NCBI GenBank assembly: GCA_965235115.1
Contig: OZ249443.1
Location: forward strand, 8,308,001 to 8,372,000
Direction: 5' to 3'
DNA: 64,000 bases
Source of the DNA: Laetmonice hystrix
Lineage: Eukaryota
The notes beneath the pieces are model-generated. The model did not search any database, was not told the origin of the DNA, and was given only the letters and a program-made list of their open reading frames with translations. Of this stretch, positions 39 to 27,000 are shown one piece after another. A program made the translations under genes and the position numbers. How positions within the stretch are numbered: position 1 is the stretch's first letter; every line of letters starts with the position of its first letter.

Positions 39-3000
39 GTCAGTGGGTGATGATCGTTAGTTCTCGTGAGTCTCCAGTGGGAGAAGTTATTGCCCAAACT
101 ATGCGATGTTTACCGTATCCCAGTATTGAGAGTTTACCGTAATAATGGGTTACCGTTTCAGTTCGAACAGTTAGCGTTTACGTGGATGGAGCGGCAGAAA
201 CAGGGTGGTACCTACAGCAGTCATCGGGCGCAAAACGAGAAACATGTAGTGGTCTGCGCTACAACCTTACACGCAGACACAATCATGGACTTTCTCAACG
301 AGTTCTACGCCCACCCAAAACTGCAGGTAAAATACAACCCTTCTCATGGCGGCTCAATAAATGGAACCGAACCTAGTATAGATAGGTCTTCCATGAGAAT
401 GTCTAGTTCTAACGTAGGCTTTCTTAATAATACGTGTGGCATGAACCAGCTTCCACGTGTACTTGTGAATTATTGGAGTGTAATACACCGATATCGTTGC
501 ATTCTGATTGTAGTTTGCTTCGCTTTATATGAGTACAGACATATTTACCAAGAATTGTGAGGGGCAAATTTGCACGTTAAGACTGTTTTACGTCTTTCTG
601 AAAGGCTTGTATACCATAATCAGGAATCATGTAGTCATTTCGAGGTCATGTTTTCTCGGATAAATCAAAGCTTTATGTGACAGACAGTTTGTGAACTCTG
701 TATGGAGGAACAGTGTTTGAGGTTCCTTTTGAGAATAATATTATATAAAAGGTCATTGTTTGCCTGAAAGTAGAAATCTCATTCTGTGCATGTTAACCTA
801 CTTTACTGGTTTCGCCTCCTTCAGATATTCATGTATCCACATTGTACATTGTGAGCTAACGTTTCTTGAGCTGACCTAAGTAACTATATAGAACTTGCGA
901 TTGGTTAGCTCAGCTCATCACCGAAGGGTGAAAGAATGGTCTGAAGCTTGCCGTGAAACCGTAAAGAGAGGTTGTGTGAAACTTTGAGCCATGTTTGAGC
1001 CCTTTCTGACCGCGAGCCTTGGAGAATGCCCCATCCCTATCCCATCGCCGCTTCAATCCTAGCTAACAAGTTCCAGCTCACAGCCAGTAACATCTAACCC
1101 AGTTGATACAGCCAGTTAATTCTCCCATACCGTGCATAAACCCAACTAAACCAGCATGTCGGATCGGATAGTTCTTTCTTACGACTATCTCGTTCATAGA
1201 GATGTCGCCAATCAGGTACGCTTCAGGAACATTTTCCGGTCTCCTACTACATACAAACAACAACGAAAACATCAACAACAAATTGGATGACGAATTGACA
1301 AGTATTTGATAAATCCGGAGCTTTTCATTAGATTAATAGAAGGTTATCAGTTGAATCATAATAACAGAAATTTTAACTGCTTAAAATGTTCTTTAATGCA
1401 AGACCATTCGTAGGTACGAATGACAAATGCTCTGTGAACCAGATGGTGAGAAAGACCAATGTTTCAAACGATCTATATTATGATTAACCAAGCATGCTAC
1501 CAAACCATAACAACTATAAACCCACCGCGTTCAACCTCAAGTATTACTAACCCCAGCCTGGGACTGGCCCCGGTATACGCACTCCTCAAGACAGCGGCAT
1601 ATCTGGTTTTATGTTGGCCCCGGGTGTAGGATTACTTCGTGGTGATGGTGTCGCCCTGTGAACTCAACAACACAATGAAAATGATCCTCCAGGTGCCCAT
1701 GTGGGCCTCCCGCGTCATTCAGATCCAAGGCTCCGTTCTGAAAGACTCAGACCTAGGTCGTTGTCGGTAAGTACCGTACATCTCCACTTAAGGCAACCCT
1801 GGCCGGGTTTTTGTTTTCGTCTTGCCAGGATTATTATGTGGTGTTAGTTTCACCCTGTGAGCTGGACCCAACCATGAAGATGATTCTACAAGTTCCAATC
1901 TGGGCTACACGAGTTATATATATCCAGGGGTCGGTCCTCAAGGATGCTGACCTCTCCAGATGTCGGTAAGAATCAAACACCTCACATACGCCACCTGGAG
2001 GCCAAATCTGGAACTACTTCCTATTAATTGCAACATACAGATGTGAACCCTCATGATCACTTACTGAGGCCATGCTGCCGTGAAAACGTTTGATTTATAC
2101 GATATGTAGGCCTGTGTGGTTTATTAGGAAGAGACGAGTTTGTCGGTTGTTACAAGTTTCCAATATTTTTTTTCATAGGAGAGAAACTATCAGACGCCCA
2201 CCTGGCACTATTTGTTATTCTCCCTGAGGTACTGTTGTGAAGTCGTTGATGAATGATGATATTTTACTGGCGCCACAGTTCCTGTATGCAGTGTTAATGA
2301 TGCCAGCAATGTTTGGTGTGTTTTACTGATATGTTACTGATGCTCGTTGATTAGGTAGGTTGGCTGCAGTGACGTGATATTTGTTCCAGAATGCAGGATG
2401 CAGAGGCCTGCTTTATACTGGCTGCCAGGAGCTATGTGGACAGGACCGCCGCAGTAAGTGGCAAGACCTGAATATTCTGAGTCACTCTTTAAATCATGTT
2501 TGTGTCTCAGTGCTTGACTGATGCATGTAGAAAAGATGATAGCCCGGAAATACTGGAAAAACATAATGTCGAAAGAAGACATCTTGGATCATGTTCGGTT
2601 TTACGCCAGTGTATAAGCTATAATATTACGTATTACGGGAGGTACTTTTGTTTGTCCATAATTTTGTACGTACAGCTCCGTGACTGACGTGACTGCAACA
2701 TATTGTATGGCCGTGCCAGTATGTAGTGACACACATGTATGTGCGTGACTGCAGTGACATCCCTATACTGTATGTGCGTGACTGTAGTGACATCCCTATA
2801 CTGTATGTGCGTGACTGTAGTGACATCCCTATACTGTATGTGCGTGACTGCAGTGACATCCCTATACTGTATGTGCGTGACTGCAGTGACATCCCTATAC
2901 TGTATGTGCGTGACTGTAATGACATCCCTATACTGTATGTGCGTGACTGTAATGACATCCCTATACTGTATGTGCGTGACTGTAATGACATCCCTATACT

Positions 3001-6000
3001 GTATGTGCGTGACTGTAGTGACATCCCTATACTGTATGTGCGTGACTGCAGTGACATCCCTATACTGTATGTGCGTGACTGTAATGACATCCCTATACTG
3101 TATGTGCGTGACTGTAGTGACATCCCTATACTGTATGTGCGTGACTGTAGTGACATCCCTATACTGTATGTGCGTGACTGCAGTGACATCCCTATACTGT
3201 ATGTGCGTGACTGCAGTGACATCCCTATACTGTATGTGCGTGACTGTAGTGACATCCCTATACTGTATGTGCGTGACTGCAGTGACATCCCTATACTGTA
3301 TGTGCGTGACTGTAGTGACATCCCTATACTGTATGTGCGTGACTGCCTGTATTGGCACAGGACCAGCACACCATACTGAGGTCCTGGGCGGTGAAAGACT
3401 TCGCGCCGGCAGCTCCACAATACTTACAGATCTTCAGACCAGAGAACAAGTTTCATGTCAAGTTTGCAGGTGAGAATGACATTTACACCAGTCTTGGCAT
3501 CTTGGTTTTATCTGTTCTAAAGGGAAGAATGTTAAATGTACTTGAACCCCAGTAGTGTTACTTTCAATCGTCATATTCTATCTGCTCGAATACTGTTTTA
3601 CGTTTTCCCTCAAGACAAATTACCTTAAAGCAGACTTAGAAAACATTTTATGAATAATTTCTTACAGAATAAATCTAGAAGTATCTTTTTGGACTGATAA
3701 ATCGTCAACATTATCAGAAAGAATATTAATTAGCCTTTCTTTGTCATGATAATATAAGAAATGAGTAAATGAACAAAAATAAACGGAAAGTGCGAAACCA
3801 GGCTGTGTAGAATAGTCTGGGTGTTAGAGATTCTTTATGTCCAGTATCTGCGTGAAATGTACATTTAAAATCTTACATAGAACACCCACGTAATTACACG
3901 CAAACTATAACGAACAGTTTGCCCAGAAATATAAGTTAACACTGATTAATATGTAACCATATATCAGAATCAAAGATGAAGGACTTTGGTGTGACAGGTA
4001 AATTGTCCGTACCTTATATTTTGGTGAAGGCCAGCTTCTACGCTGATGATGACAACATGCTCTCGGTCTAAGTAATTTAACATGATAGAATGATAGTTAA
4101 CATAGCGACAGCCATGTGATGTTCCAACCAGGAATACACTGGAAACATACAGTTTACTATTTGGGTGTAACAAGCTAATGACAATGATGACAATGGAAAC
4201 GCCCCCACATCCACCCCCACATCCACCCGAGCCTATCAAAGCAGCACAAGCATGTTGTAGTGACCTTTGACCCTGATGAGTTAGGGTGAGCTTGACCGCG
4301 TATTTTACGGGCAGGAATTAAGGTTAGTCTTTCCCAGCCATGGAGACGGAAGCAAAGTATCCCAAAACATAGATTAATTGGTGATAAAAAAAACTAGATA
4401 CATAAACATGCTTGCATGAAACGCTTGTTTAGTTCAGGTTAGAGAGCATTGCTTGCATTATTTAGTTACCTAAAGAATCCTCCAACCAACCTATACAGAC
4501 AACTAATGCATCAGTTTTAGCCCTTGAATAAGTTGGTTTAAATATTTTTTTCTGATAGTGACTCCAAAGTTGAGAACAATACTATCTTTTAATTTGGCTC
4601 GAAGTGCTGAATGTTTACAAAACGACGCCAGTGCAGGGACTCTAGAAATACACATTTGGTGCCTGATGGTGTGGTGTCTGAGTTGTTCCGAAGGCCTGGT
4701 TTAACGAACCACCTTGAATTATTTAAAACCTCTACGTTATTAACGCGCACGTGCACAGTTATTATGTATGTTAAACTCTTTGGAAACCTTCCCGCATGCA
4801 CCGCGAATAGTTAAAAGCTTCGGCTGGTAGCGTGCACTAAAATGGATATTTTGAGGACACATTCTGAAATAACGTGAATTTTAGACCCTATGCCTATATG
4901 CCTGCGTGCGTGCTGTCTAGATTATCTACATCATTTTGTTTTCAGTTTAAAGGAGACATAATACTGAAATAAGGTGTGCTTGTTTGGGTGTGTTTTCAGA
5001 GCACGTGGTTTGTGAGGACGAGTTTAAGTACGCCTTGCTTGCCAACAATTGTTTATGTCCCGGCGCGTCGACACTCGTCACGCTGCTTCTACATACGTCA
5101 CGCGGAGCGTAAGTCGTCACGTCTTACCGTCACTACAGCGGCGACATCTGGCGGCGGGGAGCGTGGGGAGGAGAAAGGGGGGGGGGGGTGATCAGGGAAT
5201 GAAGCTTTTAGTTTATACATTTCTCAAGGTACTTAGAAGAAAGAAAACATGATGTTCTTGTAACAGTATACTCACATCCTAAAACAAAATATTCTACACC
5301 ATTAGAAGAATCACATAATTATGGGCCGAGTTGTTGCTCCTACAATTCGATATACTGTGAATGTGTAGAAAGTTGATGAGTTGAGATTTTGTTGTGGTGT
5401 TGACAGAGAGGGCCAGACCTCGTCCGAGGAGTGGATGCGACTCTACGGGAAGTGCTCTGGGAACGAGATCTATCATATTCATCTCGGCGACAGCCAATTT
5501 TTTGGGGAGTACGAGGGAAAAAGCTTCACCTACGCCTCTTTTCATGCACACAGAAAGTAAGACATAGACCACCGATTCTAATTTTATACTTCGACATAGG
5601 TTAAAAAAGGGCACATTTTACACAAAAACGTAAAATAAAGGGCAAAATCTAAAGTGCTTTCATTGAAGTATCTCAGTATCTCTGGAACCCATATGACGTC
5701 ACATTGCTAATTGATGACGTCACAGGTACGGTGTGGCTCTGGTAGGAGTCCAACAGGACAAACCGGGTTCCACCATCCAGCTCAACCCGGGACCCCGCCA
5801 CATCATGAAGAGGACGGACACGTGTTTCTACATGAACATCACCAAGGAGGAAAACTCGGCCTTTATCTTGGCTCACCCTAACCAGGAGAAAGAGGGTAGT
5901 ACGAAACGTACCAGTCCCACTCCGACCACCTCCAATTACTCCAAGGTGGCCTCCATGATCGCCAGTGTCGGTGAGTCTCACGCTCCCCTCCCCCAACCCA

Positions 6001-12000: not shown

Positions 12001-15000
12001 TGCATTGTAGAATAATGCTTCTGTTGTTAGAAAATGGTTCATGTTCATTTACAGATATGATCAATAATGGGTTAATATAATACATAATCGTCAAGAGCTT
12101 TTTTTGCCAGACGAAAAATATTTGATTACCTTTTTAGTAGATATTCCTTAAACAACTGTAATAAAGTTAATATTGATTTAGTAATGATGTCGTATTCTTC
12201 AAGCGAGAACAAGGAAAGTATAAAACGACAGGATCGCGGCAGTTATTATTTTAGAAAAATATTTTTGTATAAATAATTGCAGCCCGTTTCAGATGGAAGT
12301 GAAAGCCATAAAGGGATATGTTTTATTCGGAGTCAGTCCTGACTAGACCAATAATGGCGAGGACGGGATTGGTAGTTTGGAGTGGTAGGTTGACGTCTGT
12401 TTCTATGGTTACAGGTTCTATGGTTTCCGACAAGGCACAGAAGATAGAACTACACCAAACCCACAGTAACAACCTCCTGGAGCTTCCCAAGGGAATGTCA
12501 CTGGCGGTCAGCAATTTGTCCAATTTGTCTTTTCCGATTTCATTTTAACAGTTTAAAGATCACGACAAAGATGTTTTTTGGGCAAAATCCTTCAGCATGC
12601 CAATTATGTATGATAAACTCTGCTAATCTAAAACCACAAAGATGAAATATAAAAGTAGATGCTTTGCTGAATGCATAAATGACTTTTGTGGACTCTCAAG
12701 GTTGATGAGGGCAGTGGGTTATGTTTGTAGAACCTACAGAAGAGGCCGAGTATCGCGCCGGTACCGGCGGTGTTAGAGGCTAACGGTATCGACATCACTG
12801 TGGAGTCGGAGACTGAGACAGAGAGCGACTCAGACCAAGGTGATGAGGAGGACACCGTGCCTTGGGGAACCCCCGTACCCGAGTGAGTATGACGTCATTA
12901 TCCACCCCATGAGATGAGGTTAGCGATATTTTGTTGAGACTGGTGTCAAGTAATTGACAGACACGCCGGCATTATGATACAGATGGTGTACCTATACAGA
13001 TCACAGAAACATCGAAATGCTGTACATGTATATATATATATTATGAGACCATGATATAGAGGACACAGACTGAAACTGGCTTCCAGGTTTTTTCATGCCA
13101 GACCACAGCCAACCTACATTATCAGTCTCAATTCTAGAAAAAAAACCAGGTTTGAGTTGTACCCAAATATGATTTTTTTACCAAGAACATTTTGATGGAT
13201 GTGACTGGTATGCAGAAGACGGTATATCGAATGTGTTCTGTTTTAGTAGCCAAGACAAGCTTGTGTAAGTATGACAGCCCGTCGTTGTTCAGTACAACAT
13301 TTCCATATAACGCAACATCACAATCACTAAACCAGTTAGGACAGTCATCGGCACCCTGAAATGATCAGTTACCTTTCCTAGAGCAAGCAAAAACACACAC
13401 ACACAACAAGCAGACAGACGATGTCATCCATTATTTTGTCACCGTCAGTGAAAACTTAATTTCCTCCATTATTCTATTTTAAAGTGTAGCCCGCTATTGA
13501 GTGTTGAATTATTTATACCGGGAGTGTATGTTTGGTAGTTGTCGAGGTATTCGACTTGCGTGGTGTGGTTTCTCCGGTAGAGATGCCTTGGTTTGTAACT
13601 GGTCCGATTTTAACTGTGCATGTATGAGTACACACGTACATTATACACACACGTATCTATACGTAACACTTGTATACTAGATGTTGGAGGTGTGCTTTAC
13701 ATAGTAACCCACACAAACCCACACATACAAAATCAATATGCTCAAAGTCATGTTAAATAAACAGTTCTGTTTGCATGACATTTTAGCCGACGTTTTTTAT
13801 AACTAGTTTGTTAAAGTGGTTGCACAGATATTAGTTCTTACCAACAATAAATGTCAGATTTTTCTTTAAATAAACAGTGCATGATGGATTTAATTTTGGA
13901 ACTTTGGATGTGCATGAATGTATATGACAGGGGTGTTGTTTTTCACAATATACACACTGTGTTACCATGGATACATAACTATGTATTGTAGAGGATGGGA
14001 GGTGCCAGTATTGGGTTTTCATTAGTCAAGTGTTAATGTTGATCCTTTCTCCGCCATCCTAGCCCTATACCAGTGTGTGGAGCAGGTGGCAGGTACTATA
14101 ACTGGCCCAATGAAAACCCAACTATATACTGGCTGGCCATTCAGGTATGACCCCAAGATCAGGCCTAGGGAGTCTTCTGAAAACATTTTCTAAAGTTTTC
14201 TGCCTATATAAAGCACTAGAAACAAAACGGTCAATAGTTGTTTGATCCATAAAAGAGAAATGCGACTTACATACTGTACTTCAAGGGTCACCAGAGAAAA
14301 TACCGACGGAATATTTTAAGACAATGAGAGCGATAAACCACAGTGCGCTTATTTCATTTTCTCAAGTATGATTACTATTATAGCGTAACGGTCCTATGGA
14401 ACTTCAGCTTGGGACACCCCATAGCACAACTAAACACATCGTGGTTGTCCTAATATTTAGTGTTTCTCTTTATAATTGCTTATTGAACATTATTGACTGC
14501 GCTTCTGGCAGTCATGTGCCAACACATGGAAGAAATAATGAAGATAGTTATTGATATTGTTATCTGTTAACTGATCACTTTGACAATATCACACTTTTCC
14601 ATGGTTAGAGATTAAAGAATTGCAAGTATCTGTTATTATGACTACTTTAGATAGTTTATTGTTCCACATAATTTATGCCGTTTCTTTTCATTTTTTGCAT
14701 TATTGTTTCATTGTTTTGCTAGCCGTGACCTGGAGATGATAACATTACGTCATATTTTTGTTTTTATTAATAATATAACTGATGGTTCAAAGTTGTGTTT
14801 TTTCCAAACAGTTATGTGAAAGGCTTTCCCCCTACTCCCCCCTACATTGGCTGCAGCCCGAGGCTATGTCACCTACTGAAGAACAAACAGCCATTGTGTT
14901 GCCTACAGCTTTCAAAGGTAGCTATGGCAAACACGGCAAGGTCAACGCATATCGCCATGGCGCCAAGGTCAACGAAGGTCATAGAACGGAAAATTTAGAA

Positions 15001-18000
15001 GTTTGGGTGTAACTGTGTTTCAGCTGGTTACATGGGTATAGCTTAAGCGATCCAGTGGGAACTTTACGTTGACTTCGAACGGCACAGTTCTTGGTGACAT
15101 GTTGATTCTTGGAGAGTCCTTCCTTTCTGTCAGCTTTTTATTTTACCAAGCCTTCGGTTAGTTGGACTGTTTGACTGCAATCACAAGGGAGAAACGATTC
15201 AATGAACTGCCGAATGAAATACAAACCTAGAGGATATGTACACATCAGTGCATTATGTATCATGAAAATATTGTTACTGTAAGTCAATAGGACAGAGGAA
15301 ATGGGTTGTCCCTTGTGAAGGCGGCTAAAACAGATCTACTGCTTTCTGCACTTGCATGGTGAGCACATGTGCCCCCTCCCACGACCCCCACCGACGCTTT
15401 CAGTTTCCGTATCCTTCCTTCACAGGGCAAGGTCCCGTAGTAGTAAGTCGCGGTGGCACCAGGTGGCAGCGCGCGCGCTTATGTGTCACAGTGTATGTTG
15501 CCTCAGTGGGTGTTGATAGGGCGGCCGGGCATGCCTCATCACTCATCTCTATATTTTCCTCTTAGTTATGTGCGCGGGTTCCCACCCACAACTCCTTACA
15601 TCGGTACAAGTCCAACCGTCGTACACTTGCTGCGCGACAAGCGACCGTTGTGTTGCCTGCAACTGGCCAAGGTACAAACTGCCAGACTTATCATAAAATT
15701 ATCGATATCTTCTCAGAATATTTTACATATAATAATTGGCATTATGATTTGCATTAAAAACAATACCGCGCTGAAGATTGCTTCGAATTTGCAAAATTTT
15801 GAGCGTTTGTTTTTTCTCCCTTTTTGATCTATATTGAAGACCCCATGCAACCTTTTCCCTTTTTCTGCATGACTGTTATGGTTAACAAAAATGATACTAA
15901 TCATGGCATATAGCAACCTCCCAACCAACCAACCACTACCGTACTTTGTGACCAGCAAGACGTCTTGTATTGAATTCCAGCATGGGTGTTTTAACATACC
16001 CTGAACCCATGGCGAACAAGCTATTCAAGTTATTTTGACGATATAAAAGCAGTTTACGCGGCAAGTTACTGAGAAGAAGGGGGGGGGATACGAATAAAAA
16101 GAATATTGAAAAGACTACACTGACATACGGTATATGGAATATTATAGAAAATATAATGACAGCTGGTAGAGTTGAGAGCATCAGTAGTCAGTCATGAGGT
16201 GTCATATCTGTTTTGAGACTACCAAGGGGAACAGAGAAGGCGGAAGTTGGAGGTTAGATCAGCTACCTTGTTTTGTAGAAGCTTCGGAAACCCTTACTTC
16301 AATGTTCCTGGGGTTTGAGAAGATATGCACCTGTGCGTCCTTAAAGATGCGAATGTTTGGTTTTTATCAAAGATTGACTGGAATAAGTGTTTTTTGGCAC
16401 TGTTTGTGGTTGCGCCAAATGCATGTACGCCTGGTGGTTAAGTGACTTGTGTCTCGATGTTCTCCTTTCATGTTCTCCTCACACTGCGCCATACCTAATG
16501 TATACCCCTACACGTATCTTATCTGCTCTGCCTCGTTTGCGTGTGATAAAAAGATTTCTACATGTCCACTATTACTGAGTGACCCAGTCACAGACCTGTG
16601 TGACTGAAAATACAAACCTCTGAATAAATACAGAATTAAATGTTATTAACGTAAATGAGAGTTAACGGGTCGACCCAGACAAAACACTTTGTATAGAAAG
16701 GAAAATAATTGACAAATTGACAACAGTTTTGATCACCATCCTCACATTTGTCAATAGGTTGCATTTATAATTAATTATAGTATACTAATAATAAATCGAT
16801 GGCTATGTAAGAAGTAGGGTAAAAACCGTGAAACTTTAGAAAGACGGTTTTTGAGTGTATTTTTGTTGGTATTGGCAGGCTTGTGAACACTGCAGTTTTA
16901 AACACGCCAAGGAATACAACTGGCCGAATCGGGCCATCATTGTGGCGGCAGATTATGCAAGTAATGGTCTCTATAACTTCATCGTGCCATTACGCTCGCA
17001 CGCCCGGCCTAAACACACGCTCAACCCAATCGTACTACTACTAGAGCGACCGTAAGCAACATCTTATTGATTACTTTTAAACATGTATCTCATTAATTAC
17101 TTGGCTTGATGAATTCCGGAAATTTGAAATTGCCATTCCACGCGCAGATTCATTGAGGATAAAAGCAGAATGTGCAAGCTGACAGAAAAGTTAAGAATTT
17201 TAAAGATTCTGTAAAATTTCAGGGCCACCTTTTCTTTTATAATTATAAATGATTGTTTGTTGACCTCTCTGACCTAATGACACGGGTGTCAGAGAACAAC
17301 CTTTGCTGACCGTCATTTCGTGTTCTACCGACAGGCCGGACCAGAGTTTCCTAGAGACGATTTGTTACTTTCCCATGGTTTACTGGATGATCGGATCTAT
17401 AGACTGGTTAGTATCCACAGTTTAAGTCCTCAGTGGGACCAGGGGCCAGGGTCCTGGTAGCTCACGTTAATGACGCCCCAGTATAACTATCTCGGCGTTG
17501 TGTCGAGGTGGTCAGTTTAACCTCTAGCGGAAACCGGAGTACCGGATGATAACCACCGATCTGCAGCAAGTGTCTTTTTACGTTAGAATAATTTGACCTT
17601 CAGGCATATTAGATAACGGCGAGAATTACCACAGCATTATGGTAAAGCTATGAGGAGTAATTAAGTTTATACGTGTACAATGTTACTTAAGAGCAAACAC
17701 TTTTTTCGAGGAAACCTTATAAAACAAGATAATAATGCCGGTTTAATGTTTGGATACTCAGTTTAGATGACCTGCTACGTGCGGGTATCAACCTGGCCGA
17801 TAACGTGGTGATTGTGAACAAGGAGAGTTCTAACTCAGCCGAGGAGGACACCTTGGCCGACTGTAACACCATCGTGGCTGTACAGACTATATTCAGGTGG
17901 GTTATATCCTTAACAGAAAGCTTCTATATCCCTGACTGAAAACTGCTATATAACTTACAGAAAACTGCTATATCCCTAACAGAAAACTTCTATATCCTGA

Positions 18001-21000
18001 CAGAAAACTTCTATATCCATGGCAGAAATCTTCTATATCCCTGACAGAAAACGTCTATATCCCTGACAGAAAACGTCTATATCCGTGACAGAAAACGTCT
18101 ATATCTCTGACAGAAATCTTCTATAATCCTGACAGAAAACGTCTATATCCCTGACAGAAAACTGCTATATCCCTAACAGAAAACTTCTATATCCTGACAG
18201 AAAACTTCTATATCTCTGACAGAAAACTGCTATATCCCTAACAGAAAACTTCTATATCCTTACAGAAAACGTTTATATCCCTAACAGAAAACGGACATAT
18301 CCCTGACAGAAAACTACTTCTATATCCCTAACAGGAAACTGCTATATCCTGACAGAAAAATTTTATATCCCTGACAGAAATCTTCTATATCCTTGACAGA
18401 AAACGTCTATACCCTATCCCTGACAGAAAACTGCTATATCCCTAACAGAAAACTTCTATAAACTGAGAGAAAACTGCTATATCCCTGACAGAAAACTGCT
18501 ATAGTAAAGACGGCAAAAACGTAGTCGATTCTGAGAGGTTTTTCCCACCAGACTTGGTAGGCCTACCGTAATGCCCTGGTTGAGTTGACACTCAAAACTT
18601 CCCCTTTAACATTTTCACCTCCCACTTTCTACATGATAGATTGTTTTCGTTATTTTGTAGGTTATTTCCAAGTGCCAACATCATCACAGAGCTATCGCAG
18701 GCGTCCAACATGAGGTTTATGCAGTTCAGGGCCAAGGACCACTACGCCCTCCAACTCTCCAAGATGGAAAAGGTTAGTTGATGACTTGACAGTTATGATA
18801 TTGTACGCCGAGTCTGGGTGAAATGGAGACAATCTTTGTTTCTCAATGAGGGCTTGGTTTCTGGTTGCAGCAGAAAATTAAGATAATCTCTGGGCGAGTA
18901 ACGGTGTTTGTTTGATGTGTTACTTCATCATGTCACCTTGTAGTGGGAAGTAACCGTGCATGGACTGTAGTCACTATTGAAGTAGACTTACATATATCAT
19001 TGACATTGCTGGTGGAATCCTGCTGATGTAAGGACACAGACAGGGAATGGCTGAGTAGTTTGCGTGGAGTTACGTGGTCACACCTAAACACATGTATATC
19101 AGTAGAGGACACGATATTTGATTATTTGAGTGAGCGATAATATGTGTAATGACCTGAGCCGATCTGGGCGGCCAAGGTGAATGTGGTTAGACGTAGGTAT
19201 ATATATGAATGTTGGCTTCTGCTGTGAATGGCTGGGCACTTATTTATAGACTAGTTAGGATCTATGAGAGATCGATAGTGGGAGCTAGATCCAGGAATAG
19301 CAGTTGAAAGTAACATGCATGCATGGGGCAAACAGGTCGGGAAGAGGGAACCCTTTTATTTTCCCAAAGTCTTCATTCGTCTTCGCTTTTTACCTGGAAC
19401 GTTTCATAGAGGAACCCCCGCTTCAACCCGGATGGAATAGTTTATTACAAAATACAAAACCCTCAGGCTTTCAATGATTTTCTACTCCACCTTCTTATTG
19501 GGCCATCGATTCCCATTTCAGAAGCATTGGCCCGGGCGCATTCATTGATTTCTATTGTTAGTTTGTAACTTCTTTTTATGTTCTTTTTTCCCGCTACAGA
19601 AGGCTTTGGTAAGTGCTTTTTTGTCCATGGCCTTGACCTTGTGTCACGTGACTTCATTCCCGGCATGCACTCTACCTGTCGCATGCTGCACTCATTCCCT
19701 TGGACCCATCCCCAAATTGTCAAATAATTCTGAACGTAAGTAACGGAGGGATATCTTATTTGAGATACACTCCCAAATGGCCATGGAGGAAAAGAGCTTA
19801 CATCTAGGCCTATAGGTCTACTTTGGACCGATGGTTTTGGTAGGCCTAAGTCCACACTGCACGGTGTCTCTCGCTAAATAGCAGGAGTGCAAAATAATTG
19901 AATCCGTTAAGTCCGATTTTGAATGTTTGTGCGACGTCAGAGAATGAAGAATGTTACAAAATGTTATTCAGGTGTAATTCGGGTAACAGTAAGGAATGGA
20001 CTTGTTTGCATGGCTTCTCATTCCTTCTGTCGAAATACCCGTGAACTGGAGCGGTTGACAACACTGAAATTTTATGGTCAGAGTCATTCTGGTATCGCAT
20101 TCGATTCGTTCTGAAAGGCAACCTAAGCGACTCCAAGGTTGTCCAAATGAGGTTATATATCCTTTTCTGGATTTAATGAAGCCATTGCGATAAGAAAGGC
20201 TGGAAATGAAATGACTTGTGTTTTATTAATTAAAACCTGTGTTAATGTCCGGAAATCTTAATGTTTAAATGTAGATGATTTTACCAAATCATCGTTGAAT
20301 TATTATTTTATTATAGAATATATTTTCTAGTGCACGTTTTCGTTATGCACCTTTACGTCGTGTACAAGTTCGTTCCACAGAGGGTTCCACGTAACCTTAT
20401 TCGTTTATTTAGATTTCTAGACTGTTTTTAATTTCCTTTGTTCCTTTTTGATCGTTAAATAAGATTTAAAAATACGGATTTTTATAAGGGCAGGGCAAGT
20501 GAAGCAAATTACTTTTTTCTCTTCCTATATTTCTCTTCATATAATTGACCTGTTTTGACCAATGGGTATCGTAGGTTAGATTCGGTTTTTATACCCGTTC
20601 TGTCCTAGAATGTAGGCTGAACGGGCCTCACGTCTATACTTACATTATTATCTGTCGGCAGCTACCAATACCATGCACGAACTGTGTCTTACATTTGGTC
20701 CGACATTTCCATATAACTCTCACCCCTCTGAGTTCTTTGATGATGACCCAAAACAATGGTAGCTTTCAGGGGAGGGAGCACCCCTCGGTGTAAGGGCGTC
20801 AAATGTTAGAAAAAAATGACCTTTTATCAACGATAATAAGGCCACCCTATCCTGCGTACCAAGGTCCTGCTGGCCTGTGTAGGCGGCCCCCAACATGGGC
20901 CCAGCTTGACAAGGGGAGACCTCACAGACCGCGCCCCTTGTACTAACTATGTATACGTGTAGGCAGGTGATTCCCATCCCCCGGTACCGGCTAGGGTCCT

Positions 21001-24000
21001 CCTGTCACAGTGCCCGGTTCTCACGGTCCTTCCGTCTCTATGTATACGTGTAGGCAGGTGATTCCCATCCCCCGGTACCGGCTAGGGGTCCTCCTGTCAC
21101 AGTGCCCGGTTCTCACGGTCCTTCCGTCTCTATGTATACGTGTAGGCAGGTGATTCCCATCCCCCGGTACCGGCTAGGGTCCTCCTGTCACAGTGCCCGG
21201 TTCTCACGGTCCTCTCGTCTCTATGTATAGGCCTAGGTGTAGGCAGGTGATCCCCATCCCCCGGTACCGGCTAGGGGTCCTCTTGTGACACTGACAGTGC
21301 CCGGTTCTCACGGTCCTCTCGTCTCTATGTATAGGCCTAGGTGTAGGCAGGTGATCCCCATCCCCCGGTACCAGCTAGGGGTCCTCTTGTGACAGCGCCC
21401 GGTTCTCACGGTCCTCCCGTCTCTATGTATGCGTGTAGGCAGGTGGTCCCCATCCCCCGGTACCGGCTAGGGGTCCTCCTGTGACAGTGCCCGGTTCTCA
21501 CGGTCCTCTCGTCTCTATGTATATGTGTAGGCAGGTGATCCCCATCCCCCGGTACCGGCTAGGGGTCCTCCTGTGACACTGACAGCGCCCAGTTCTCACG
21601 GTCCTCTCGTCTCTATGTATACGTGTAGGCAGGTGATTCCCATCCCCCGGTACCGGCTAGGGGTCCTCCTGTGACAGTGCCCGGTTCTCACGGTCCTCTC
21701 GTCTCTATGTATACGTGTAGGCAGGTGATTCCCATCCCCCGGTACCGGCTAGGGGTCCTCCTGTGACAGTGCCCGGTTCTCACGGTCCTCTCGTCTCTAT
21801 GTATAAATTTTCAGAAAGAGAAGGAGCGAGGGTCACATCTTTACTACATGTTCCGGCTGCCGTTCGCTGCCGGTAATGTGTTCAGTGCCAGTATGCTGGA
21901 CACACTTCTATACCAGGTACGACTTCAGGTCGGGTACTTCTATACACGCTTTGTACGGGGACATGGAATCTTTAACAAATTCTGCTCTAAAAGTTCGAAG
22001 ACAATTCATGTGTCTTTAAAAATCCCTTTGGTCCTTGTAAGCTTTTGTCTTTTGTTAAAGTTAAGCTGAGGTCAACTTAATGCATGTTATCCTACCCCGA
22101 CGGACCGTTTGGATGGAGGAGATGCCGTTAAAAACTTGTATTTTATCATCAAGAAATCCTGTATAATATATATGTCTATAGTAGTGGATGTAAAACCAAC
22201 CTGTGAGTATTAATCTTAATTTGTTTTTTTAACCCAGGCCTTTGTAAAGGATTACCTCATTACATTTGTACGTCTCCTGCTCGGCATCGACCAAGCTGTG
22301 GGCTCAGGCCACCTCTCCTGTGTGAGTGCAACCATTATCATTTTGCCATTCTCACTATGTGCCAACTAATTTACTCAACTCTGTGGGTAAGGAGAAAACG
22401 AGAGTGTACAGCAGGATGCGGTATAATCTTTCCTGCTGATCAGAATTCTGGAACCCCCTGTAGATATCAACTTCACCCTGTACCTGGAACCCCCTGTAGA
22501 TATCAACTTCACCCTGTACCTGGAACCCCCTGTAGATATAAACTTCACCCTGTACCTGGAACCCCCTGTAGATATAAACTTCACCCTATACCTGGAACCC
22601 CCTGTAGATATCAACTTCACCCTGTACCTGGAACCCCCTGTAGATATCAACTTCACCCTGTACCTGGAACCCCCTGTAGATATCAACTTCACCCTGTACC
22701 TGGAACCCCCTGTAGATATCAACTTCACCCTGTACCTGGAACCCCCTGTAGATATCAACTTCACCCTGTACCTGGAACCCCCTGTAGATATCAACTTCAC
22801 CCTGTACCTGGAACCCCCTGTAGATATCAACTTCACCCTGTACCTGGAACCCCCTGTAGATATAAACTTCACCCTGTACCTGGAACCCCCTGTAGATATC
22901 AACTTCACCCTGTACCTGGAACCCCCTGTAGATATAAACTTCACCCTGTACCTGGAACCCCCTGTAGATATCAACTTCACCCTGTACCTGGAACCCCCTG
23001 TAGATATCAACTTCACCCTGTACCTGGAACCCCCTGTAGATATCAACTTCACCCTGTACCTGGAACCCCCTGTATAAACTTCACCCTGTACCTGGAACCC
23101 CCTGTATAAACTTCACCCTGTACCTGGAACCCCCTGTAGATATCAACTTTACCCTGTACCTGGAACCCCCTGTATCAACTTCACCCTGTACCTGGAACCC
23201 CCTGTAGATATCAACTTTACCCTGTACCTGGAACCCCCTGTAGATATCAACTTTACCCTGTACCTGGAACCCCCTGTATCAACTTCACCCTGTACCTGGA
23301 ACCCCCTGTATAAACTTCACCCTGTACCTGGAACCCCCTGTATCAACTTCACCCTGTACCTGGAACCCCCTGTATAAACTTCACCCTGTACCTGGAACCC
23401 CCTGTAGATATCAACTTCACCCTGTACCTGGAACCCCCTGTAGATATCAACTTCACCCTGTACCTGGAACCCCCTGTATAAACTTCACCCTGTACCTGGA
23501 ACCCCCTGTATCAACTTCACCCTGTACCTGGAACCCCCTGTATAAACTTCACCCTGTACCTGGAACCCCCTGTATAAACTTCACCCTGTACCTGGAACCC
23601 CCTGTATCAACTTCACCCTGTACCTGGAACCCCCTGTAGATATCAACTTCACCCTGTACCTGGAACCCCCTGTAGATATCAACTTCACCCTGTACCTGGA
23701 ACCCCCTGTAGATATCAACTTCACCCTGTACCTGGAACCCCCTGTAGATATCAACTTCACCCTGTACCTGGAACCCCCTGTAGATATCAACTTCACCCTG
23801 TACCTGGAACCCCCTGTAGATATCAACTTCACCCTGTACCTGGAACCCCCTGTATAAACTTCACCCTGTACCTGGAACCCCCTGTAGATATCAACTTCAC
23901 CCTGTACCTGGAACCCCCTGTAGATATCAACTTCACCCTGTACCTGGAACCCCCTGTAGATATCAACTTCACCCTGTACCTGGAACCCCCTGTAGATATC

Positions 24001-27000
24001 AACTTCACCCTGTACCTGGAACCCCCTGTATAAACTTCACCCTGTACCTGGAACCCCCTGTAGATATCAACTTCACCCTGTACCTGGAACCCCCTGTATA
24101 AACTTCACCCTGTACCTGGAACCCCCTGTAGATATCAACTTCACCCTGTACCTGGAACCCCCTGTATAAACTTCACCCTGTACCTATGTTTCAGATGAAG
24201 ATCAGCAAGGATGAGTTATGGATCCGGACGTACGGGCGCCTGTACCAGAAGCTATGCTCGACAACGTGTGAGATCCCTATCGGAATCTACCGGACCCAGA
24301 CCCAACTGTCGTCCGACTCCTCCTCGGTAAGTTATCCCCACCCCCACGGTCCCATCACAGAATAACATACTCTGTGGTCCCATCACCCGGCAGTCGTCAA
24401 GTTTTCATCGTCAAATCACATAATGGCGGGTGTGGGTGAAAAGGGTAGGCCAGGGACCGAGGGCCGCAGGGGATATCAAGAATTTCATCACCCAAGGACA
24501 TCCCACGTCTCGACTATAAGAGATGAACCCTTGCTCAGGAATCACCAGGTCATTTCTCAAGGGATCGTACCAAGTCGTTTCCCTGTCAGAACCTCCGGTT
24601 TTTAATTAGCATCGTCATCGACACCATCTATGGCATGAGTTTTATCCAGTAGCGAATCCAGGGGCTGGGTCGGGGTTTTCATCCCATTCGGGAGGTAAAA
24701 ATAATGGAACCCAAATGTAACCTTCATCAGTCCATCAAAATCCACATCGGTTCATTCATTATTAACATCATCACCGTTAGCCGGGAGAGAGATTTGTGAT
24801 GAGTTAAACCTGACTAAACACTTACCGTGTGTTTGTCAGAGTGAGCGGCGACCGTCGTTCTTTGCCTCTGTAAGTACACACACGTCTTCGTACCACACAC
24901 CAACTTGCCTGACTCAAACCTCTTCCCCCGGGAACGATCTCTGGTAGGGAGACCCAGTATCGGCATGATGTCAGTACCTTACAGTCATCACAGCCATGGC
25001 AGTCTACCTGCTAAAGACCTTCCAGTGTATTCTACTCCACAAACATTGCATTGCTTTTCCTTGGATCTAAATCACATTGGAGTTTCATTGCGAATGCCTT
25101 ACCCAGAAAGGGAACGCAAGTTTGGAATGCTGCCTGCAACACTTGGGAGAAGGGGAGGGCGTATTGCGATACCATTTTATTCCTAAGTGACCAATCCCAA
25201 TACCCCTTTCAAGTGAAGTCATGTGCACCTGCCAATGAAAATGATTCTCTCATAATCGGATGGCGTCGTTTTCTCGAAGCACCTCCGTGCATGGCTCGTG
25301 GTGATTATGTCATGTTTTTAAAGTTAAGATGTATCATTTGTTCTGGGGTGGGGGTCAATTAGTGTTGCTGTCGGTTTGTTCCATGATGAAAGACCATGGC
25401 GCTGACCATGATCCTGTTTCTCAAAACTAAAGTTCTTGCTTAAGCTTAAGATTGATCTGAGCACTTGTGATTGGCTGGTCTTCTGTGACTAGCCAATCAG
25501 AAGCTTTAGCTGGGCCGAGATGACGATAAACCTTGCCTCGTGTACCGCAAGCATGTGACACTCGGCTGAGACCTGCTACATGGACCAAACTGTTATCATA
25601 ATCTGTGTCACTGAATGCTATCTTCATATTGGCGACCACTCGTTAGGTCGCTCCAAACTCCGCAGCCTTTATTGTGTTTCTGTCAGGGGGGGGGGGATTA
25701 CATGTCAGTTTGTGACATGTCTTGCTCTTCTAGAACTCGTAACTTACTCATCAGTCTTTTCATTCGGCGACCATGAGCATGATATACTACATAACGTTAA
25801 TTACGGAGTCTATCATGACGTATGTATCGATATTTAGTGAGTTTAGCAATATTGAATAGTATTGGTTATTACTGAACTCAATGTGAGTTATTAATATTAG
25901 TACTTAGTGAACTCGGTATGACGTATCAGTGGTAACCAAACATGGCATCAGGTAACAACGTCCGTGCTCACTGACTTCAGCAGCAGAAGTTTACCTTTAA
26001 CAAATGTTCCTTTCCCGACACATCGCATTGCGCAAATCAAGTCCTGTCGATTATTGGGCTACATTGACTCCCTTAAAGGGCCACCAGCATTTAGGAAGCA
26101 TGTACTTTACCTTTGCTAATGTTGTTTCTAAACTATACATTTCTGTGAATATGGTATACTTTATTTTTACTCTCTTTTCTTTCCGTCATAATGAAGATAA
26201 TGGTTTGTGATTCACAACCCTGTAAGATAATTAGCATATACTGCCTATTTATTGGTTTCAGCTGTGGGATGCTAAAGAAAGTTATATAAACTTTCCACTT
26301 TAATTCGTTTTGAGAACAACTCAATGGTTCTGTCTTCGTATACCTCTATTTTACCCGCTCTTTTCTACTTTATCCCACTGTTAATGTTGTAAAGTCGACA
26401 ATCTTGCTTGAAAGCAAAGCGAAAGAAATGTGTAATGAGAGTTGGAATCGTATGCCGCCGTGGTAGACGGAGTAAAGTCGGCCGTGTTGTAGACAACTCT
26501 GTGTTTGACCACTTCAATGTGCTCCTTGTTTGGCCTTGATTTTTGACTCTGTTCGTGCATGTGTTTCGTCCCTCCTCGGAAGCTGTTGGGCTCAGAGCAG
26601 AGTCCCGACCATAAAGTCATTGGGCGCAAAAGCCTAAAGCGTAGACGGATGCATGGCAGCTTGTACGTGAGTATAAAACTACTGTCTCGCCTCGAGCCTT
26701 CGCCACAAAACACCACGCAACACATGCCTACAGTCAGCTCGCACAGAATATTGATGTAATGATACCATCCACGTCAGTGGGCACTTTCTGTGTCAGTCTT
26801 CAACACACAAAGTTAACAATCGAAATTTGTTACAAAATAACCGAGTTTGAAGCAGCGGCAATCGTCCATTAAACGTATTGAGGCTACTGTGGTTGTTGAA
26901 GCGTTCTGTGGTAGACTTCTTCTCGCAGCTGCATGTGTGCCGTTTTGCTCTTTGTTTGCCCTGTCTTTTCTTTTCTATCCTTTATGTTGCTTTCTCTTTA

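Follow-up and report, generated by a model that had tools for sequence, protein, structure and literature searches.

A stretch of 64,000 nucleotides (nt) from the genome of Laetmonice hystrix (contig OZ249443.1, positions 8,308,001 to 8,372,000 of the forward strand, assembly GCA_965235115.1) carries, within its Slo2/KCNT channel gene, two copies of a 106-nt exon that go back to an old tandem duplication. This whole stretch is referred to below as the window, and all coordinates are those of its + strand. The two copies, B1 and B2, probably serve as alternatives, exactly one of which enters each productive mRNA. Tandem-duplicated alternative exons are a standard route by which ion-channel genes diversify, and the pair described here would be a splice switch of a common type, of note chiefly because one of the copies has lost a near-universal cysteine.

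The exon pair and its host gene

Exon B1 (14812-14917) and exon B2 (15566-15671) are separated by an intron of 648 nt that begins with GT and ends with AG (14918-15565). The two exons are identical in length and phase, each is preceded by a pyrimidine tract and an AG (acceptor ttttttccaaacag for B1 and tattttcctcttag for B2), and each is followed by a GT that belongs to a weak donor, gtagct and gtacaa, respectively. The encoded segments share 25 of their 35 residues, the nucleotide sequences share 66 of 106 positions, and the likeness is far beyond chance. An earlier note on this DNA, made from the letters alone, had described two 106-nt exons of equal phase with this protein identity and this intron, and the description was confirmed. 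Moreover, B1 and B2 fall on one identical 35-residue interval of every full-length orthologue that was mapped. A six-frame search of the 627-Mb assembly returned no copies besides B1 and B2, and a low-stringency search of the introns did not find a third exon copy. The sequencing data for the locus consist of three DNA runs from one sample; contigs from these runs cross B1, the 648-nt intron and B2 unbroken, and therefore the arrangement is not an assembly artefact.

The pair lies between two constitutive exons. The upstream exon (12731-12882, donor gtgagt) encodes the acidic end of the linker between RCK1 and RCK2, shares the motif RPSIAPVPA with the orthologue fragment P0128 and stops at 12882 two bases (GA) into a codon, which both B1 and B2 complete with a T to give Asp. 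The downstream exon (16879-17051) is entered in phase 0, starts with ACEHCSF and encodes an invariant Cys-x-His and the first beta-alpha unit of RCK2. The intron 5' of B1 spans 1929 nt (12883-14811) and the intron 3' of B2 spans 1207 nt (15672-16878). When these exons were spliced in silico, the frame stayed open through the upstream exon, B1 and the downstream exon, and equally so with B2 in place of B1. Inclusion of both copies gave a TGA three codons into the next exon, which bears out the frameshift that the note had predicted, and with both skipped a stop came up towards the end of the downstream exon. The exon length of 106 nt is not divisible by 3, and so an early stop results from double inclusion and double skipping alike. 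Transcripts with both or neither of the B exons would be expected to go to nonsense-mediated decay, and one B exon per productive mRNA would yield two isoforms of the channel, with differences at 10 of the 35 residues.

The + strand of the window comprises most of the host gene, which starts before position 150 and ends past 28600. At an identity of 67-76%, between 17 and 21 of the window exons are collinear with full-length KCNT orthologues from molluscs, annelids, a brachiopod and arthropods, and the orthologues used for this mapping carry PF07885, PF22614 and PF03493. The gene is the sole Slo2/KCNT gene of the genome, and by homology it is a gene for a sodium-activated K+ channel of the Slack/Slick type. 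B1 alone and B2 alone each match the KCNT1 structures 5a6e, 5u70 and 8hir over all 35 residues (E 3e-11 to 2e-10). The segment aligns to residues 749-783 of human KCNT1 and 722-756 of the chicken protein, immediately before the first strand of RCK2, in agreement with the location at the N-terminal edge of RCK2 that had been suggested for the pair.

Several further features of the gene were observed. Two acceptors are candidates for the upstream exon, both in frame and separated by 9 nt, at 12731 and 12740 (tag/AAC CTA CAG/AAG), and the choice between them could include or omit the three residues NLQ. Just 3' of the B1 donor, at 14923-14974, there are two copies of a 25-nt unit at a spacing of 27 nt, both with CAAGGTCAACG; this sequence resembles the junction of the B2 exon end and its donor (CCAAG/GT), and the two units could be decoy donors or a product of chance. 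Minisatellite arrays fill several of the Slo2 introns (17880-18500, 2690-3470, 20900-21870 and 22430-24200). One of the intronic arrays is built of a 22-nt unit, CTGACAGAAAACTTCTATATCC, and others have longer units with long open frames in all three phases.

Selection on the two copies and their distribution

The divergence between B1 and B2 indicates that both copies have been kept for the protein that they encode. Counting by NG86 gave 24 synonymous differences (Sd) over 26.3 synonymous sites, a saturated proportion (pS 0.91), and 16 non-synonymous differences (Nd) over 78.7 non-synonymous sites (pN 0.20; Fisher p=4e-11 against the synonymous sites). The third base is the same in only 9 of the 25 codons for residues common to B1 and B2, and the 60-nt flanks of the two exons are 28-30% identical, which is the random level. 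Since pS is saturated, pN is low and the flanking introns are unrelated, we infer that the duplication is old and that both copies are under protein-level selection.

Additional evidence comes from P0055, a genomic open reading frame fragment of another species. B1 is the divergent type of the exon (P9, C14, R17, N24, Q26), in which the near-invariant Cys19 is retained. P0055 contains an exon of this type, identical to B1 at 27 of 35 residues, with codons that fit AG and GT at the same boundaries and with a recurrence of the B1-derived states K3, P9, C14, N24 and Q26. The presence of these states in P0055 indicates that the B1 type predates the split of the two species and has been conserved since. 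With P0055 added to the selection evidence, it is very likely that both copies are in alternative use. The differences among the haplotype contigs are many in the introns and two in the upstream exon, both of these synonymous, and none is listed inside B1 or B2; with about 2.6 differences expected there, this lack of listed polymorphism is weak evidence.

Two observations on the exon sequences may be added. The synonymous divergence of B1 and B2 (24 of 26 sites) lies above the 75% expected at saturation. Both exons also contain an identical 11-nt block, TTGTGTTGCCT, which encodes Leu-Cys-Cys-Leu and may be a shared splicing enhancer or a result of codon bias.

Several points weigh against the alternative use of both copies. 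The sequencing runs for the locus are of DNA only, and the case for splicing rests on sequence evolution. A single, B2-like version of the exon stands in every one of the 80 annotated isoforms examined (octopuses, abalones, clams, snails, a vent snail, Lingula and a tubeworm), and in the annelid Ridgeia and the bryozoan Bugula the entire gene locus holds one copy, the Ridgeia copy being a 106-nt exon with phases as in B1 and B2. Because the annotated isoforms and these two loci show one copy, the pair appears to be restricted to the lineage of the Laetmonice genome and P0055, and with such a restricted occurrence its regulation cannot be read from conservation. The contig of P0055, with its 1.7 kb, is too short to show a co-occurrence of B1 and B2. 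Finally, the changes L18V and C19V in B2 affect near-invariant positions and could be the first signs of relaxed constraint.

It could be argued from these points that one of the copies, likeliest B2, is a recently retired or never-used relic and that the gene makes a single isoform. The DNA-only runs would fit such a scenario, as would the single version of the exon in other lophotrochozoans and the valine at position 19 of B2, which occurs in none of 94 other distinct Slo2 sequences of the exon, collected from many phyla for counts by position. However, 25 of 35 residues have been kept despite saturated synonymous sites and introns, and conservation of the B1 type extends to a second species. 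Also B2 itself is of the canonical lophotrochozoan type: it agrees with the mollusc and annelid consensus, which we regard as ancestral, at 30 of 35 residues, and its frame, AG and GT are intact and its pyrimidine tract is good. A relic is compatible with these facts only if the function was lost very recently, and we consider it improbable. With the frame rule taken into account as well, the use of B1 and B2 as alternatives is by far the preferred reading.

A word-based search with P0055 for further B1-type exons matched only P0055 itself. The fragments P0065, P0126, P0136, P0139 and P0146, which read PPY-x-GCS, were considered as an ancient B1 type and rejected: they have P9 and C14 of B1, but in the next exon their identity is no higher than about 44%, and they represent distant lineages. 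The likeness between the intron 3' of B1 and the read-through of P0055 was not significant either, as 1657 of 2000 shuffles scored as high.

The orthologous exon shows variation of other kinds elsewhere. A 4-kb Joint Genome Institute (JGI) metagenome contig (L004) contains at positions 861-1389 3.9 tandem copies of the exon with a period of 134 nt and 97% identity, the repeat unit being the 106-nt exon plus a 28-nt GT..AG spacer. The spacers do not have the length that an intron needs to be spliced, and an exon of the contig is identical in protein to that of Mya arenaria; the array is a young, independent amplification of the orthologous exon. In some annotated isoforms of Haliotis and Gigantopelta (P0209-P0217, P0223 and P0224) seven residues, VQPTYHA or VQPKSYG, are inserted right behind the exon. 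Since the insert starts with Val, as in a GT read-through, it is probably due to an alternative donor 21 nt downstream.

The pair follows a tendency observed in many other genes. According to PMC3342872, tandem exon duplications are found in 7-17% of metazoan genes, and the same article reviews the origin of mutually exclusive exons from tandem exon duplication (Kondrashov and Koonin, 2001). B1 and B2 resemble such exons in their adjacency, homology, equal length and phase and in the frame rule that admits one exon only, and they likewise swap one protein segment by "internal paralogy"; there is no difference in kind, and it is the gene and the position that differ. The textbook example is the sister family Slo1/BK, whose alternative exons evolved convergently at domain boundaries, as the review states with reference to Fodor and Aldrich (2009). 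The Slo1/BK proteins (slowpoke, slo-1, KCNMA1) also have a gating ring of RCK1 and RCK2, and their sites with duplicated exons at domain boundaries arose independently in different phyla. In contrast, B1 and B2 lie in Slo2/KCNT, in a Slo2-specific Cys/His-rich stretch before RCK2, and the pair is lineage-restricted, being absent from the molluscs, the annelid and the bryozoan examined. A full-text literature search for mutually exclusive exons in Slo2 gave no relevant record.

How the choice between B1 and B2 may be enforced

Two causes of exclusive splicing are ruled out. Steric exclusion of the alpha-tropomyosin type is incompatible with an intron of 648 nt and a proximal branch point of B2; the branch point is placed near the acceptor because the last AG before the B2 acceptor lies about 45 nt upstream. 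The earlier note had considered the intron too long for this mechanism, and we agree. An incompatibility between U2 and U12 sites is excluded by the donors (gtgagt, gtagct and gtacaa) and by the absence of [AG]TATCCTT. The same gene harbors another exon pair built on the same principle in RCK1 (1630-1965), both copies of which map to one orthologue interval; its exons of 137 nt are separated by an intron of 62 nt, where steric exclusion is possible, whereas B1 and B2 with their 648-nt intron need a different mechanism.

The donors of both alternative exons are weak, and the flanking constitutive sites are strong. Exon choice probably comes about by a competition of two weak-donor exons together with trans-acting factors. 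We infer that competition under trans-acting control, combined with the removal of wrongly spliced transcripts through the frame and nonsense-mediated decay, is the most economical account of the exclusivity.

The earlier note had named RNA pairing, beside nonsense-mediated decay alone, as an example of the other mechanism that is needed. In the docking and selector clusters of Dscam exon 6, 14-3-3xi and MRP1, as in the case of B1 and B2, long inter-exon introns need a non-steric mechanism, and competing intronic pairing of the same kind could enforce the choice here, where the 648-nt length of the intron precludes steric exclusion. One candidate is an AT-rich element at 16093-16114, which is 73% complementary both to 14683-14704, 5' of B1, and to 15121-15142, 5' of B2. 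However, this AT-rich triple is weak and within chance. We compared the best ungapped complementary segments, with G-U pairs allowed, for each pair of the three introns with those of 20 dinucleotide shuffles: the best scores were 33, 38 and 31, and the maxima of the shuffles were 28-33, 29-40 and 28-36. No complementarity above the dinucleotide shuffles was found for the three intron pairs, unlike in Dscam exon 6, 14-3-3xi and MRP1, and an Rfam search of 12500-17500 gave no match. It is very unlikely, then, that docking and selector pairing controls the choice between B1 and B2, and the earlier proposal is not upheld.

The cysteine missing from B2 and its possible meaning

The counts over the 94 distinct Slo2 sequences bear on the differing residues. 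Position 19, the equivalent of human C767, is Cys in 92 of them, and positions 29 and 30 are Cys in all 94; position 17 is Thr in 85 and position 18 is Leu in 80. B2 has Val-Val at positions 18-19 where Leu-Cys is usual, and B1 has Arg-Leu-Cys at positions 17-19 and an extra Cys at position 14. The two positions at which the cysteine content differs, 14 and 19, are therefore Cys and Cys in B1 and Thr and Val in B2, and the translations confirm that both exons retain HLL and LCC, as had been noted before. A cysteine conserved at position 19 in 92 of 94 sequences across animals must have been lost by B2 and not gained by B1. The two extra cysteines with which B1 had been credited are thus reduced to one: the Cys of GCS is an addition of B1, but the Cys of LCH is ancestral and was lost in B2. 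As far as the alignment tells, B2 is the ancestral-looking version of the exon minus a near-universal cysteine, and B1 is a diverged version that keeps Cys19 and adds one more.

Cys19 does not stand alone. In an alignment of 23 orthologues the Cys-x-His of the next exon is invariant, and the conserved set of C19, C29, C30 and this Cys-x-His has the appearance of a knuckle with a structural or metal-binding role. AlphaFold modelling of an orthologous RCK2 gave the Cys/His cluster a predicted local distance difference test score (pLDDT) of about 85, with few regular structural elements; the overall model is poor, with a mean pLDDT of 56 and values below 50 in the first half of the exon, and its best structural matches are Slo2.2 structures, 8hir and 5u70 first. 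The segment also bears on gating, since the human gain-of-function epilepsy variant p.Ile760Met (PMC4811893) falls within it, I760 being exon position 12 by the alignment to residues 749-783. It is most likely that the pair tunes the behaviour of the gating ring.

What the tuning consists of can be suggested with less confidence. A tentative possibility is that the choice of exon switches a metal site: the Cys/His cluster would form the inhibitory Zn2+ site of RCK2, B2 would be without one of its ligands (the C767 equivalent), and a B2 channel would differ in its inhibition by divalent ions or in the stability of its closed state. For human Slo2.2, a Zn2+ site with an inhibitory effect is reported in RCK2, and it is conserved in Slo2.1 but not present in Slo1 and Slo3 (Zhang et al., 2023, as cited in PMC13626651). 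The cluster of C19, C29, C30 and the Cys and His at positions +2 and +4 of the next exon is invariant or nearly so across phyla, and its pLDDT of about 85 despite little secondary structure would be in line with such a site. However, the match of the reported Slo2.2 site to this cluster is a hypothesis, and C19, as one of five candidate ligands, may be dispensable.

A further proposal, made in the earlier note, was that the two differing cysteines form a redox- or lipidation-sensitive switch, with Cys at positions 14 and 19 in B1 and the insensitive Thr and Val in B2. Cys19 belongs to the invariant set, though, whose pattern suggests a structural or metal-binding element and not a free regulatory thiol, and the segment, which lies within the gating ring in the cytosol, has no evident palmitoylation context. 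No supporting evidence was obtained for either redox sensitivity or lipidation, and the switch as a whole seems a poor candidate.

For the annotation of the locus it follows from the preferred reading, B1 and B2 as alternatives, that gene models must take exactly one of the two exons. For the channel, the more specific idea is that splicing switches a near-universal cysteine, the C767 equivalent, in or out of the Cys/His knuckle and so makes Slo2 channels in which an inhibitory Zn2+ or thiol-sensing site is either complete or incomplete; we regard this idea as doubtful, and, if it were true, nature would have provided a splice-encoded counterpart of an engineered point mutant. The cysteine altered by the pair is conserved from vertebrates to insects, and the segment that is swapped contains the site of a human epilepsy variant (I760M). 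The two natural isoforms would therefore offer a ready comparison for the role of the Slo2-specific Cys/His cluster before RCK2.

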